Of a stretch of DNA of 64,000 bases, positions 16,278-38,096 are shown piece after piece; the stretch's first letter is position 1; every line of letters begins with the position of its first letter. Source of the DNA: Octopus sinensis. Lineage: Eukaryota. The stretch spans positions 81,096,001-81,160,000 of the forward strand of contig NC_043003.1 in assembly GCF_006345805.1 (NCBI RefSeq), read 5' to 3'. Both the position numbers and the translations under genes were made by a program. A model generated the notes under the pieces. The model saw nothing but the letters and a program-made list of their open reading frames with translations. It made no database searches and had not been told where the DNA came from.

Positions 16278-16511
16278 TATTTCTTTACTACCCACAAGGG
16301 GCTAAACACAGAGGGGACAAACAAGGACAGACAAAGGGATTTAGTCGATTACATCGACCCCAGTGCGTAACTGGTACTTAATTTATCGACCCCGAAAGGA
16401 TGAAAGGCAAAGTCGACCTCGGCGGAATTTCAACTCAGAACGTAACGGCAGACGAAATACGGCTTCGCATTTCGCCCGGCACGCCAACGTTTCTGCGAGT
16501 TCGCCGCCTTT
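16278..16511 (-). mobile_element. SINE family C, tail subtype C2 (Tx1-like tail), full length with a 20-bp TSD
   Basis: Head AAGGCGGCGAACTCGCAGAAACG...GAGTTGAAATTCC; identical flanking repeat TTATATTTCTGTCAAATATA at 16258-16277 and 16512-16531. Confidence 0.92.
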
Positions 16512-17094
16512 TTATATTTCTGTCAAATATAACTATGCAATTATATAAACGCGTTCATTTTCTTCTTCAGTAGGCTGTAGAAAAATGTGATTTAAAATAC
16601 ACACGTATAATAAAGATCCGCAATTTACAATGCATTTCGGTAAAACTGAAACATGGAAAATGTTCACCAAAATCTCTCTGTGAGGTGATAGGTAACGACA
16701 AACTTAAGTTCGCAACAAATATGGATGTAAAAATATAACCAGAAAATTAGAGATAAGTGCTTTAAATACATGTCGAATGTCTCAAGAATATATTTCCGAA
16801 CAAAGAGAGGGCAAAATAAGGGTGGAGCAACTATATTTAATGCCGGGCGAAGAACACTCAAAGCTTGAACGTATTCAGATTGGATGAGTCAAATATGTTT
16901 TTACGCCAGGCAGGTCCATGTGCGCGGTGTGGAGACGAACAAAAGCATATCCACAAATCTACTGCTTTCGCAAGCAGACTTCAGAAGGAACCTGTTCAAA
17001 ATGAAACAGTTTACATATATTCGAGACTGGCGTAGGCTAAAACACGACTTGGCGATCATCATTTTCGCAATGTTTAAGATATATTATAATTCTA

Positions 17095-17303
17095 AAGGCG
17101 GAGAGCCGGCAGAATTATTAGCATGTTAGACAAAATGCTTAGTGGCGTATCATCTGTCTTTACGTTCTGAGTTCAAATTCCACCGAAATCTACCTTACCA
17201 TTGATGCTGTCAGGTTTGATATATACCAGTTGAGTACTTGAGTCGTTTTAATTCACTTTTACCCTACACTAAAACTGCCGTCTTTGTGCCAAATTTGAGA
17301 CCA
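17095..17303 (+). mobile_element. SINE family C, diverged
   Basis: AAGGCGGAGAGCCGGCAGAA head, GTTCTGAGTTCAAATTCC B-box, tail ...TTTGTGCCAAATTTGAGACC. Confidence 0.8.
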
Positions 17304-18080
17304 CTATATATCATAACGCACGTCTTTGTTATCTTCAGTATTCTTGGAGATGTGGCAAGGAAAAGATGCTTGGTAGTTTGAAAAATATTTATAGTTATAT
17401 AGCTCTATTTTCATGATTGTAATTTTAAATACTAGGATTGGAAACATATTGAATTTGAAAGACTACTCCAGAGAGATTTCTTTAAAAATATATATTTTTC
17501 AGCTTTGTTTACCATGTTGCACGTGTTTTGAATTAGGTTGGTGGAGTATAGCTAAACGAAAATATTGCAAATATATCTCCCCAACTGCGTCATGTTGATG
17601 AAATGAATAGATATGTGTCCAAATTTAAATTCCAGAAACATAATTACGTCTAAGGTAGAAGAAAAGACAGTATGTATTTTAAATGGATATGTATAGCGTG
17701 TTTGATTCTCAGTTCAAGCAGCTTAGCTAACACGCGTGAGGTGTGATAATGCTTGTGTCTGTGATTATATACATATACACATATACATGTAAAACATACA
17801 TATATGTATATATAAACATATATATATATACATATACATAAATGTATATATACAATGCTTATATATACATATATATATATATATATATATATATATACAT
17901 ATATATATACATAAATATATATATATATATATAGGTAAAAACTGTAGTTCAAATTCTTGGAGAGAAAACTGTAGTTCAATATATATATATATAGACGCGT
18001 ACATATATATTATACACATACCCACGCACAAACACACGCACATATGTATAGAGGGATAGATAAATATATTGATATATTAA

Positions 18081-18218
18081 TACATACATTCATACATACA
18101 TGCATACATACATACATACATGCATACATACATACATACATACATACATACATACATACATACATACATACATACATACATACATACATACATACATACA
18201 TACATACATACATACATA
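18081..18218. repeat. (CATA)n microsatellite
   Basis: Direct tandem units. Confidence 0.95.
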
Positions 18219-18638
18219 CGCGCACATATATTTACATATGTCTGTTTATAAACAGACGCACGTGTTTGAATATTTTTTAATGCTATTTAAAATGTAGCTA
18301 CTAATATCTAGCATGAATTTCGAAATAACAGCTCGGCTTTCAAGAAGGAAATGTCTTTGACCATTATTGTTATGCGACAAGAGAACAATTTTCCCATTTG
18401 CTTTCGAAAATACTCACTTATATATATTTATATATTGAATTTATATAGAATATTTCGTCGTAACATTTGTAAATTAAAGGGTGAAACGCATATGTAGAAA
18501 ATGAAAGGAAATTTTCATATGATGTGTATGGCAGAGAAAAGGGAAAATGCAAGCAAACGACGATATTAAAAGGCACACATATCTGCTTACGTGAAGTATC
18601 GAAAGTGATTGTATATCTTGGCAATATACATGTATAAC

Positions 18639-18855
18639 AAGGCGGCGAGCTGGCAGAAACCTCAGTACGCCGGGCGAAATGCTTAGCAGTATTTCATCTG
18701 TCTCTACGTTCTGAGTTCAAATTCCACCGCGGTTGACTTTGACCTTCATCCTTTCGGGGTCGATAAAGTAAGTACCAGTTGCGTACTGGACTCGATTAGA
18801 TCGACTGGCGCCCTCCCCTAAAATTTCGGGTCTTGTGTCTAGAGTAAAAAGAATA
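18639..18855 (+). mobile_element. SINE family C, tail subtype C1
   Basis: AAGGCGGCGAGCTGGCAGAAAC...GAGTTCAAATTCC...TTTCGGGGTCGATAAA...AATTTCGGGTCTTGTGTCTAGAGTAAAAAGAATA. Confidence 0.9.
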
Positions 18856-19258
18856 TATATATATATATACAGTGAGACGATACCAAGTCTGAAATAAATA
18901 TTGCTTTTCTTTTGTCTAAATCACGTATATATAAAATTGTTGATAATAATTTTTTTTTGTATGAATAAACGTGGGTATTTGTGTACAATTATCTTTGTTT
19001 GAGTTTATTTGTGATGTGACAAAAGTCATGCATCTGTTAAGAGATTTTTCTTTTTTGATAGTACACAGAAAAAAAAAACACTTCAATATATCCATATAAC
19101 AAATAATGGTAGGAATATGAATATTTTGAGGACAGACATATAACGACAGACAAACATTCAAGGATCACTCAATGTATCTAAGTAGGGCATAATAAATAAA
19201 TTTACAAAGAGTTAACACAGGTATCGAAGTGTCAGCTATGTTGGTCACCATTGCATGT

Positions 19259-35673: not shown

Positions 35674-35884
35674 GTATATATAACGAGAGAGAGAGAGAGA
35701 GAGAGAGAGAGGGGAGTATTACATATATACCAATATACGTGTACACGAATTACTCATACACCTAAATATATGTATATATGAGATATACATATATGCGTGA
35801 TATATGTATGCGTGTATTTATGTACGTATGTATGTACTTATATATGAAATAGGTGCTGGTATAGATGTGTAATATGATGTTTGT

Positions 35885-36253
35885 TTCTCAACCATGTGAT
35901 TCTGCGTTCAGTCCCACTGCATGACAGCTCGGTCCAAAGACTTCTACTAAAGCAGTGGGCTGAGCAAAGCCATGTGAGTGATTTACTAGATGTAATCTGA
36001 TTTGGTAGACGGAAACTGAAAGAAGCTGTGTTTTTGCGTGTGTGTGAGAATTTGTGCATGTCTCACCCACCATCTCCCGCTTAGCATTGGTTTTTCTTTA
36101 TGACCACGTAGCCTAGCGTTTCGACGAATAATAATACCATATTGTGTAAATACTAGAACTAAAACATAATTACTTGGGTTGCTGTATCGACTAAACATTT
36201 TGAGGTCTTGATCCAGTATGGCCGTAGTCCAATGCTTGAAACAATGAAAAGAT
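35885..36253 (+). mobile_element. SINE family A, old diverged copy
   Basis: GCGTTCAGTCCCACTGC...GATTTGGTAGACGGAAACTGAAAGAAG...CCAGTATGGCCGTAGTCC...GAAACAA. Confidence 0.75.
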
Positions 36254-36261
36254 ATATATAT

Positions 36262-36657
36262 ACTCTTTTTTACTATTTTACTTGTTTCAGTCATTTTTGA
36301 CTGCGGCCATGCTGGAGCACCGCCTTTAGTCGAGCAACTCGACCCCGGGACTTATTCTTTGTAAGCCCAGTACTTATTCTATCGGTCTCTTTTGCCGAAC
36401 CGTTAAGTGACGGGGACGTAAACACAGCAGCATCGGTTGTCAAGCAATGCTAGGGGGACAAACACACACACATACATATATATATACACATATACGACAG
36501 GCTTCTTTCAGTTTCCGTCTACCAAATCCACTCACAAGGCTTTGGTCGGCCCGAGGCTATAGCAGAAGACACTTGCCCAAGATGCCACGCAGTGGGACTG
36601 AACCCGGAATCATGTGGTTTGTTAGCAAGCTTCTTACCACTCAGCCACTCCTGCGCC
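36262..36657 (-). mobile_element. SINE family A, full length, young
   Basis: Reverse complement colinear with 34311-34717 (about 90% by eye over the 5' 165 nt). Confidence 0.95.
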
Positions 36658-36990
36658 TATATGCATATATTTTATTTGAAGCTATGAATTATATACAATG
36701 ACTAGCATGAGATATAGCGGGAGTCTATAATTGGAGAGTCAAGAGAAAGAAATCGAAAGTGAGAGATAGCTTTCAGAGTGACAATTAAAACGGATAGTGA
36801 AAAAGGTAGGTAGATGGATGTAAGCAAAATTAGAAAGACAGATATCACAAAGAATAGAATAGAAATTTAGACGAATAGAGGAATCTATAGAGAGAAAATG
36901 TTAGAAAGAATGTGATAAGGCAGAAGATAGATAGAGAAAACCTTAGGAAAGTAGGTGGAAAAATATAAAGATAGAGTGATGGAAAGATGC

Positions 36991-37151
36991 AGATAGATAG
37001 ATAGATAGATAGATAGATAGATAGATAGATAGATAGATAGATAGATAGATATATGGATAGATGGATAGATAGATAGATAGATAGATAGATAGATAGATAG
37101 ATAGATAGATAGATAGATATATGGATATATGGATAGATAGGTAGATAGATA
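36991..37151. repeat. (GATA)n array, left of the Tx1 insertion
   Basis: Direct tandem units. Confidence 0.95.
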
Positions 37152-38096
37152 TGTTTCTTTATTAGCCACACAGGGCTGCACACAGATAGAACAAATTACA
37201 AGGTAGAGCTTTTCTTTTGAAGGTTTAAAAAAAAAAAAAAAAAAAAAAAAAAGGGGAAAGGGGAGTTTCGATCAAAAGGGATCGTAAAAGGAGAGAAAGA
37301 GGACAAAAAAAAGGGGGGGTTAAAAAAAAAAAGGGGGGGGGGAGAGGGGAAAAAAAAAAAAAATTGATCAATAGGGATCGTTATCACAGAAATGTCAATA
37401 TGAAGTGTAAAGGGGAGGACAGGTGAGGTTTACCCGTGGAAAGAAAAGCCTACGGAAAAGACCACGGTAACCTCGGTCAATGAAGTCACATTTTATATTT
37501 CTTTTTTTTTTTTTTTTTTTTGCAAATAAGCAACTCTCTGTTTTCGATTTCTGGGTTCATAGGACTATGCTCAAGGTGGCTTCGTCATTCATACGTGCCA
37601 TTCTTGCTACATTCACCCATTTTTTTAAAACATTCGCTAGACAAAACTTGCCTCTCTACTCTCACTTTCCTTTTCAAGTGGTACTTGAAGAAGTTGATGA
37701 GAGATTGACCAGAGAGGAAAGTGTTTGTCTCCAATCCTTTCAGACGCGTCCACCAGATACATTCTTTCGCCATAGCCACAAGGATGATGAAAATAGCTCT
37801 TCCTTCCCGTTTGAAGGAAGGAGGCGTGACAATATTGACGATAGACTCAGCTGATAAACCGACTCGTCCCACACGTGACAGCAGTTGTTCGACATAAGCC
37901 CACAGGTCGGAAATTGTTGGACACTGAACGAGTGCGTGCAGAACGGTTTCGTCGCTCTGACCGCATCTCGGGCAGGTCGGCCCCGTGTTTCTCGAGCCGT
38001 GTCTGTAGAGCTTATCCCGAACGGGTAGCGCTTCTCGGTAGCACTGCCAGGCCAGGGATCTCTGGAAGTTGTCCATGGGCCCTGGCCCGAAAGTCG
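37152..38096 (-). mobile_element. 5'-truncated L1/Tx1-clade LINE (ORF2 C-terminus plus 3' UTR) with an 18-bp TSD
   Basis: zf-RVT-like CPRCGQSDETVLHALVQCP followed by AKECIWWTR; 3' end CTAATAAAGAAACA; TSD TAGATAGGTAGATAGATA at 37134-37151 and 38097-38114. Confidence 0.9.

Follow-up and report, generated by a model that had tools for sequence, protein, structure and literature searches.

An octopus SINE and an L1-type LINE end in the same structured 3' tail: a candidate stringent-type pair

The sharing of a 3' tail between a short interspersed element (SINE) and a long interspersed element (LINE) is textbook knowledge for the L2, CR1, RTE and other clades. The eel pair UnaL2/UnaSINE1 is the stringent-LINE system that Kajikawa and Okada reportedly described in 2002, and the octopus SINE families OK, OR1 and OR2 are said to have been described by Ohshima and Okada in 1994. 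Here we analyse 64,000 nucleotides of the Octopus sinensis genome (contig NC_043003.1, positions 81,096,001 to 81,160,000; hereafter the window), in which a SINE subfamily, C2, ends in the 3' tail of a LINE family that we assign to the L1 superfamily. An earlier reading of the window (the sequence-only reading) had proposed C2 and a Tx1-like LINE as a SINE-LINE partnership.

Tails of L1-clade LINEs are rare among described pairs. A survey of 58 SINE/LINE pairs, published in 2013, holds three SINEs with such tails, two from maize/sorghum and one from Chlamydomonas, and none from an animal (PMC3747384); in the literature searched, no stringent SINE-LINE pair is recorded for an animal L1/Tx1 lineage. 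In maize and sorghum, the lineage of LINE1-1_ZM (L1 clade, 'monocot 1a'; partner of the SINEs ZmSINE2 and ZmSINE3) has the last ~45 nt conserved and the rest diverged, as in the octopod LINEs described here (Ohshima 2012/2013; PMC3472496, PMC3747384). Like the octopod LINE, LINE1-1_ZM has a tail hairpin with compensatory changes that is shared with tRNA-derived SINEs, which has been read as stringent recognition (PMC3472496, PMC3747384). The maize SINEs end in (T)n, whereas the octopus tail ends in AAUAAAGAAAU(A) with no repeat. The loop is UCU in maize and CUUGU in octopus, the sequences are unrelated, the octopus hairpin is shorter, and the hosts are plants in one case and molluscs in the other.

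The experimental model of stringent recognition is provided by eel UnaL2 (L2 clade) with UnaSINE1 and by zebrafish ZfL2: a stem-loop at the 3' end is what ORF2p recognises, and SINE RNA ending in that tail is mobilised in trans (Hayashi et al. 2014, PMC4176376). Elements of the UnaL2 type end in (TGTAA)n, which is used for slippage; the octopus elements lack a terminal repeat, belong to another clade and are known from sequence alone. A Tx1-clade LINE has been proposed to mobilise an animal SINE before, namely in crocodilians, with Tx1-Mar LINEs and SINEU (Kojima 2015, PMC4494074). There, the link consists of a shared target preference (Mariner-N4_AMi) and 5' parts derived from small nuclear RNA, and both partners are poly(A)-tailed (PMC4494074). 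The octopus pair differs in that its link is a structured 3' tail without poly(A) and in that its varied flanks suggest no strict target specificity. Finally, human L1, which moves Alu and SVA in the relaxed mode, has the same architecture as the octopod LINE, with an apurinic endonuclease (APE), a reverse transcriptase (RT) and a Cys-rich C-terminus, and produces target-site duplications (TSDs) of up to ~20 bp. Human L1 needs a poly(A) tract only and has no 3' sequence in common with Alu, whereas the octopod LINE has no poly(A) and shares a specific tail with SINEs.

SINEs account for ~11.6% of the assembly of O. vulgaris (PMC13282606), and their expansion is considered specific to octopuses (PMC8967140); of the 900 SINE families recently active in O. 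vulgaris, 893 are 'unclassified' (PMC13282606). The 'tRNA-Deu/tRNA-Core/unclassified' SINEs of recent octopus annotations (PMC8967140, PMC13282606) are elements of the same kind as the window SINEs, from the same kind of host. In the octopus and mollusc repeat literature searched, Repbase and the 1994 description excepted, neither a partner LINE nor a shared tail is named for octopus SINEs.

We compared the 3' end of the window LINE copy (37152-37195) with that of C2 (16278-16321), for which the sequence-only reading had claimed a gapless match of 34/44. Both 44-mers read as quoted, and their ungapped identity is indeed 34 of 44 positions. Scanned against the window on both strands, at ~128,000 positions in all, the LINE 44-mer had no unrelated match above 26/44. 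The only outliers above this background were the two C2 tails, at 34/44 and 27/44 ungapped, the lower value being that of the second copy, which has a 1-nt indel. Other features named by the earlier reading were recovered as well: the second C2 copy (23200-23435, minus strand) has the LINE-like AATAAAGAAATA, CCTTGT lies upstream of the matched region in the LINE and in C2, and neither element ends in poly(A). The long TSDs of 18 bp for the LINE and 20 bp for the SINE are both exact on re-check, and in both elements the tail is terminal inside these duplications.

Similarity at the level of the LINE family, which had been set as a test, is greater than that seen with the window copy. C2 matches the tail of L003, another O. 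sinensis LINE, at 36/46 and that of the window copy at 34/46; the window's own LINE copy is not the best match to C2. The similarity reaches ~60 nt, with 42-43 identities over 60-61 positions against L003 and L004, the latter from Argonauta hians. With C2 as the query, BLAST finds the LINE tail of L003 at 86% over 43 nt (E 8e-8) and that of L004 at 83% over 42 nt (E 1e-5).

The LINE relatives have a common terminus, ...CUCUAUGUUU-GGCC-CUUGU-GGCU-AAUAAAGAAAU. It reads ...UUGUCCCCCUCUAUGUUUGGGCCCUUGUGGCUAAUAAAGAAAU (also given as ...GUCCCCCUCUAUGUUUGGGCCCUUGUGGCUAAUAAAGAAAU) in L003, which is 47% identical in amino acids, and ...GUCCCCUCUAUGUUUUUGCCCUUGUGGCUAAUAAAAGAAAUA in L004, a near-complete element of ~5.8 kb. 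The same terminus is present in L005 (A. hians, two tails) and in the Logan contig L017, and the 3' untranslated region (3'UTR) of L001 (an ENA contig, 77% identical) is collinear with that of the window copy and reaches the start of the tail before the contig ends. In an alignment of five LINE copies (A3), the upstream columns of the 3'UTR show 41% identity, which is noise for AT-rich DNA, and the last 32-47 columns show 60-69%. As expected for a stringent LINE, the 3' terminus is kept among diverged copies while the rest of the 3'UTR is unalignable.

A covariance model (R2) was built from five LINE tails from outside the window, with no window sequence and no SINE, and was run with filters off. 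Over the 64 kb of the window this LINE-only model identifies three significant matches only, and both C2 tails rank first (16279-16319, 45 bits, E 3e-8; 23201-23242, 40 bits, E 5.5e-7), ahead of the window LINE tail itself (37153-37193, 29 bits, E 2e-4). The next best match in the window scores 17 bits (E 0.17). Taken together, the identities of 34/44 and 36/46 and the values of the LINE-only model (E 3e-8 and 5e-7) identify the 3' end of C2 as homologous to the 3' end of the LINE. Exact-pattern scans for the tail gave 0 matches in genome contigs and 0 in viral contigs, and a search of metagenomes for additional LINE copies yielded three loci only, all distant at 34% identity, which were set aside.

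A covarying stem-loop in the 3' ends had been suggested as a further check. RNAalifold, run on 19 tails (five LINE, two C2, two C1 and 10 from Argonauta non-autonomous elements), predicted by itself a hairpin of four pairs that has a CUUGU loop and stands just before the terminal AAUAAAGAAAU. Double changes are seen in three of the four pairs. The stem is GGCC/GGCU in the LINE consensus, AACC/GGUU in LINE L017, GCCC/GGGU in C2 copy 1, UCCC/GGGA in C2 copy 2 and GGGC/GCCU in C1. The hairpin cells are paired in 92% of cases, as against at most 51% with the partners slid, and the covariation score was reached by none of the shuffles (0/500). In most LINE and C2 tails the hexamer AAUAAA is 5-6 nt away from the end.

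Argonauta loci contain many non-autonomous elements ending in ...UCGGCCCUUGUGGCUAAUAGAGAAAUC. Among these, L004 1-360 is a SINE with a different tRNA-like head and the same tail, and an Octopus-type central body is joined to the same tail at L004 7018-7160 and 10092-10229 and at L005 7759-7620. Since the tail is found on SINEs of different make-up in Argonauta, it was recruited by several SINE lineages and predates the split between Octopus and Argonauta; Argonauta SINEs with different heads acquired it independently. Separately, the SINE at L004 1-360 is tandemly repeated (~2.3 copies, period 157 nt), and the array immediately precedes the 5' end of the near-complete LINE. More distant LINE relatives, in contig L006 of the cuttlefish Acanthosepion pharaonis and in a similar contig (L007), end in ...UCGGCCUUGUGCCACAUUUGUAC...AAUAAAUAAU; here, the CUUGU loop is kept on a flipped stem, GGC/GCC. 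In the Logan contig L015 (SRR11869390), a LINE relative ends at 1500-1610 in the variant GGCC-CGA-GGCU-AUCGUAGAAGAUA, followed by an inverted tRNA-like SINE head, and further tail variants therefore exist in the LINE group. The same contig opens (1-30) with a C1-type SINE tail, GGCCUUGUGCCUAGAGUAGAAAAGAG.

To which clade the LINE belongs was judged mainly from its Argonauta relative L004, which encodes a 639-aa ORF1 and has matches to Exo_endo_phos (E 5e-11), RVT_1 (E 2e-18) and zf-RVT (E 6e-8). The window copy holds only the zf-RVT end of ORF2. Protein relatives of this fragment in O. sinensis and A. hians, the closest named, are 47-82% identical in amino acids, and tblastn with the Argonauta ORF2 recovers window positions 38115-37621 at 61%. 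Among solved structures, the RT of the Argonauta relative best matches human L1 ORF2p (E 5e-22, as against E 1e-13 for the R2 element), and so does its APE (E 8e-13), collinear over ~515 residues, in a comparison that is coarse in that the PDB represents L1 and R2 only. With APE and RT both most similar to those of human L1 ORF2p, and with zf-RVT and a separate ORF1 as well, the family is assigned to the L1 superfamily. None of the 129 relatives listed bears an informative clade name. A 2026 annotation of O. vulgaris lists, among the LINEs that were recently active, a single superfamily of L1 type, L1-Tx1 (13 families; PMC13282606). The Tx1 label is therefore plausible, and our family is probably what repeat annotators call L1-Tx1. 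Strict target specificity is typical of many Tx1 elements (PMC4494074); the DNA 3' of the other LINE and SINE copies (~20 sites) is variable and AT-rich, in many cases starts with TAT, and shows no evident common target. One protein record, P0014 ('MAG: zinc-binding domain-containing protein [Herbaspirillum sp.]'), shares 60% identity with the ORF2 of the Argonauta LINE; its most likely source is cephalopod DNA that was wrongly binned into the metagenome-assembled genome of a bacterium.

C2 can be described as a composite SINE, with a putative tRNA-type head for RNA polymerase III (Pol III), a conserved central body and a 3' module of 45-65 nt that would have been copied from the octopod LINE. 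BLAST and alignment show the head and central body of C2 copy 1 to be common to at least five other copies in the window, which contains at least seven related SINE copies or fragments in its 64 kb. The SINE consensus has a B-box-like GAGTTCAAATTCC and a weak A-box-like TGGCAGAA. ARAGORN found no tRNA, Rfam at E<=10 gave no match to the SINE, tRNA included, and Rfam at gathering thresholds gave nothing in the whole window; on the LINE 3'UTR, Rfam at E<=10 gave only chance matches to bacterial small RNAs. The 234 nt of C2 copy 1 contain no T4 run (T5 is present in some LINE tails). This is compatible with Pol III transcription of C2, and the SINE transcript must therefore end in flanking DNA. 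The window SINEs, likened by description only, presumably belong to OK, OR1 or OR2 or to the annotated octopus families of tRNA type.

Because C2 ends in the 45-60-base tail of the LINE family, with the same hairpin, this family (~5.5-5.8 kb, with a large ORF1, APE, RT and zf-RVT) is very probably the engine of C2. In all likelihood the two would form a stringent-type SINE-LINE pair in which the LINE family copies C2. The LINE is most likely of the 'stringent' type, its ORF2p recognising a terminal RNA module that would consist of the U-rich CUCU(A/G)UGUUU, the 4-bp hairpin with the CUUGU loop and the terminal AAUAAAGAAAU(A). Target-primed reverse transcription would be started at this defined end, on a nicked AT-rich target and in the absence of poly(A). 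SINE RNA made by Pol III has the module too and could then serve as a template in trans, and integration would leave TSDs of 18-20 bp and no A-tail, for the SINE as for the LINE. What we infer here is thus recognition by ORF2p, mobilisation in trans, the direction from LINE to SINE and the LINE subfamily that would drive C2.

The shared structured tail points to a specific candidate driver, an L1/Tx1-type family, and to a defined and mutable RNA element. An animal case would support stringent recognition as ancestral in the L1 clade, with mammalian L1 having relaxed secondarily to its poly(A)-only mode. The finding thereby bears on how elements of the L1 clade choose their templates.

Several points weigh against the proposed pair. 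Mobilisation of C2 in trans by the LINE is deduced from sequence. The window provides only two C2 copies and one truncated LINE copy, and the tail comparison covers L1-type LINEs, so that an RTE, CR1 or Dong-R4 element of octopus may have a better-matching tail. The hairpin has only 4 bp, and single-sequence folding energies are no better than those of shuffles (z -0.2 to +0.5). An extended helix (UCU.UGUU with AAUA.AGA) has 81% of its cells paired and few double changes, and we do not claim it. Lastly, the tail contains AAUAAA, so that part of its conservation among LINEs could serve the formation of mRNA 3' ends.

Alternatively, the module as a whole may be kept for the processing or stability of RNA 3' ends, with AAUAAA and a U/GU-rich element upstream of it forming a polyadenylation unit as in mammalian T+ SINEs, and the SINE may be moved by another LINE (RTE, CR1 or Dong-R4) or non-specifically. 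This is an unlikely explanation. The canonical AAUAAA close to the end of most LINE and C2 tails speaks for it, polyadenylation of AATAAA-bearing SINEs after Pol III transcription is known (PMC12101331), and RTE, CR1 and Dong-R4 LINEs were recently active in O. vulgaris (PMC13282606). However, the genomic copies lack any A-tail, and the shared region of 45-65 nt extends far beyond a hexamer. The hairpin covaries between SINE and LINE, and Argonauta SINEs with AAUAGAGAAAU have lost AAUAAA, keep the hairpin and are abundant. In addition, the TSD lengths of LINE and SINE agree (18 and 20 bp).

The pair could also have arisen in the reverse direction, a LINE lineage having captured the tail of an abundant SINE and adapted to it. 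Sequence data do not in themselves polarise the transfer, and SINEs far outnumber LINE copies in octopus genomes (PMC13282606). Conversely, the tail is present in LINE lineages up to 53% apart in protein, in two octopod superfamilies, and it is shared by SINEs with unrelated heads and bodies. Moreover, a related hairpin, GGC-CUUGU-GCC, ends the LINE relatives of decapodiforms, animals in which SINEs are scarce. Occurrence in diverged LINEs and on unrelated SINEs is most simply read as that of an old LINE feature repeatedly acquired by SINEs, and we regard the reverse direction as improbable, more so than a role in RNA processing.

A highly improbable explanation is that the LINE family has no such tail of its own, and that the tail of the window LINE is a SINE tail fragment, brought in by a nested or adjacent insertion, or a one-off chimera made by template switching. 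A tail-only SINE fragment does exist in the window (23447-23512), and template switching by L1-type RTs is an established source of chimeric retrocopies (PMC4494074). The window LINE copy lies in a (TAGA)n microsatellite (36991-37151 and 38097-38221), and both copies of its TSD include the variant unit TACC at an identical offset; the TSD is therefore a true duplication despite the (TAGA)n. A single exact TSD of 18 bp encloses the ORF fragment, the UTR and the tail, and all three were therefore inserted as one piece. Furthermore, at least five other LINE copies, all independent (O. sinensis, A. hians and further contigs), have this tail at their end, and the 3'UTR of L001 is collinear with that of the window copy up to the tail. 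The LINE lineage may have begun long ago as a chimera, which would leave the present working of the pair unchanged. As for chance or low-complexity likeness of two AT-rich 3' ends, which a window of 34% GC with many simple repeats and a tail with an A-rich end might favour, it was refuted by shuffle and background controls (26/44 in the background versus 34/44; BLAST E 8e-8 and 1e-5 to the L003 and L004 tails; LINE-only model E 3e-8 and 5e-7) and is hardly credible.

While the shared tail holds up as a feature of the LINE family, the second part of the sequence-only reading, in which the C1 subtype has a different tail and uses another partner, is not supported as stated. C1 tails read ...UUUCGGGCCUUGUGCCUAGAGUAGAAAAGAAU, with the similar hairpin GGGC-CUUGU-GCCU and an A-rich end, ...AGAAAAGAAU. 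The 11-mer GGCCTTGTGCC of C1 (exact at 23464-23474) is identical to the hairpin of decapodiform LINE tails. The LINE-only model is not significant on C1 (E 2.2), and the top short matches in a BLAST of decapodiform LINE tails fall in SINE tails at 23464-23474, 45874-45884 and 17284-17297, each with E 0.5-2. A different lineage within the same LINE group may be the partner of C1, or something else may. The third, older type of SINE tail resembles the decapodiform LINE 3' end GGCCUUGUGCCACAUUUGUAC, with short matches that are individually not significant (E 0.5-2).

A broader proposal, which we offer only tentatively and consider rather doubtful, is that an animal L1/Tx1-type lineage is strictly tail-recognising and has kept the CUUGU hairpin since the coleoid ancestor. 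Variants of its tail would then be carried by C2, C1 and the older '...UUGUGCCAAAUUUGA...' SINEs, and the lineage would drive the SINE expansion of octopuses. If true, this octopus-specific expansion (>10% of the genome) would be driven largely by one L1-type group and not by the RTE element highlighted so far.

Table 1. Positions of the LINE copy, the SINE copies and their parts in the window
Feature	Position	Strand	Details
LINE copy of the L1 superfamily (assigned), 5'-truncated, 945 bp	37152-38096	-	ORF2 C-terminus, 3'UTR and tail
ORF2 C-terminal 166 codons, stop-free	38094-37597 (stop 37596-37594)	-	zf-RVT PF13966, E 2e-8
LINE 3' tail ...CUCUACCUUGUAAUUUGUUCUAUCUGUGUGC-AGCC-CUGUGU-GGCU-AAUAAAGAAACA	37152-37211	-	LINE-only model R2 at 37153-37193, 29 bits, E 2e-4
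Hairpin in window LINE tail	37165-37178	-	
AAUAAA in window LINE tail	37158-37163	-	
LINE TSD, 3' copy, 18 bp, TATCTATCTACCTATCTA on minus strand	37134-37151		inside (TAGA)n; exact match to 38097-38114
LINE TSD, 5' copy, 18 bp	38097-38114		exact match to 37134-37151
SINE C2 copy 1, 234 bp	16278-16511	-	head with B-box-like GAGTTGAAATTCC, conserved central body, putatively LINE-derived tail of ~65 nt
C2 tail AAUCCCUUUGUCUGUCCUUGUUUGUCCCCUCUGUGUUUA-GCCC-CUUGU-GGGU-AGUAAAGAAAUA	16278-16344	-	R2 45 bits, E 3.4e-8
C2 copy 1 TSD, 3' copy, 20 bp, TATATTTGACAGAAATATAA	16258-16277		100% over 20 nt to 16512-16531
C2 copy 1 TSD, 5' copy, 20 bp	16512-16531		exact match
SINE C2 copy 2, 88% identical to copy 1	23200-23435	-	R2 40 bits, E 5.5e-7
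SINE C2 copy 2 (position of the whole copy), tail hairpin UCCC-CUUGU-GGGA, then AAAUAAAGAAAUA	23200-23435	-	
SINE C1, 5'-truncated, tail ...UUUCGGGC-CUUGU-ACCU-AGAGUAGAAAAGAAU	22998-23199	-	adjoins C2 copy 2
SINE C1, tail ...UUUCGGGU-CUUGU-GUCU-AGAGUAAAAAGAAU	18633-18854	+	
Tail-only (5'-truncated) C1 fragment ...GGGC-CUUGU-GCCU-AAUGUAGAAUAGAAUA	23447-23512	-	model R1, E 2e-4
Older SINE copies, third tail type ...GCCUUGUGCCAAAAUUUGAAAUC / ...UCUUUGUGCCAAAUUUGAGACC	45660-45843, 45856-45890	-	
Older SINE copies, third tail type (same)	17094-17310, 14912-15130	+	

The 3'UTR of the window LINE copy is 442 nt long and contains homopolymer expansions. On the minus strand, 37227-37380 and 37505-37525 hold long homopolymer blocks of T (T26 included), C and T/C as well as a run of A21 inside the 3'UTR; no such blocks are present in the relative L001. 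The A21 run is not the end of the element. The 3'UTR also has a direct repeat, ACGATCCCT(A/T)TTGATC, and a long inverted repeat, GAGGUUACCGUGG...CCACGGGUAAACCUC (37428-37486, minus strand), at a distance of ~270 nt before the tail. This inverted repeat is kept in L001 (972-1027) and is not part of the SINE. In L001 the inverted repeat folds into a stem of ~14 bp (-19.9 kcal/mol, z = -4.0); the segment of the window copy that was folded is 4 nt too short and did not give the full stem.

Self-BLAST of the LINE fragment found no second copy in the 64-kb window, and Pfam found no further LINE domains in the other long window ORFs; no other LINE clade is therefore comparable within the window. A far more divergent L1-like ORF2 C-terminal fragment lies at 28919-29607 (minus strand), with 29% identity to the Argonauta ORF2 and many stops, and no recognisable tail of the LINE/C2 type is found on its 3' side. 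The (TAGA)n/(TATC)n arrays of the window are located at 354-405, 8857-8910, 19344-19494, 22016-22114, 23823-23966, 26487-26615, 36991-37151, 38097-38221 and 47095-47210, and the LINE copy is inserted in one of them. Of the compared elements, none is broken by the assembly gap at 21293-21392, which falls in low-complexity DNA rich in (TA)n; the closer of the two C2 copies is ~4.8 kb away and the LINE 15.8 kb, and the gap has no bearing on the finding.

On the minus strand, 22998-23512 contains three SINE insertions head to tail: the tail-only C1 fragment, the full C2 copy and the 5'-truncated C1, the last of which (22998-23199) directly abuts the C2 3' end. The SINEs thus seem to insert into or beside one another.

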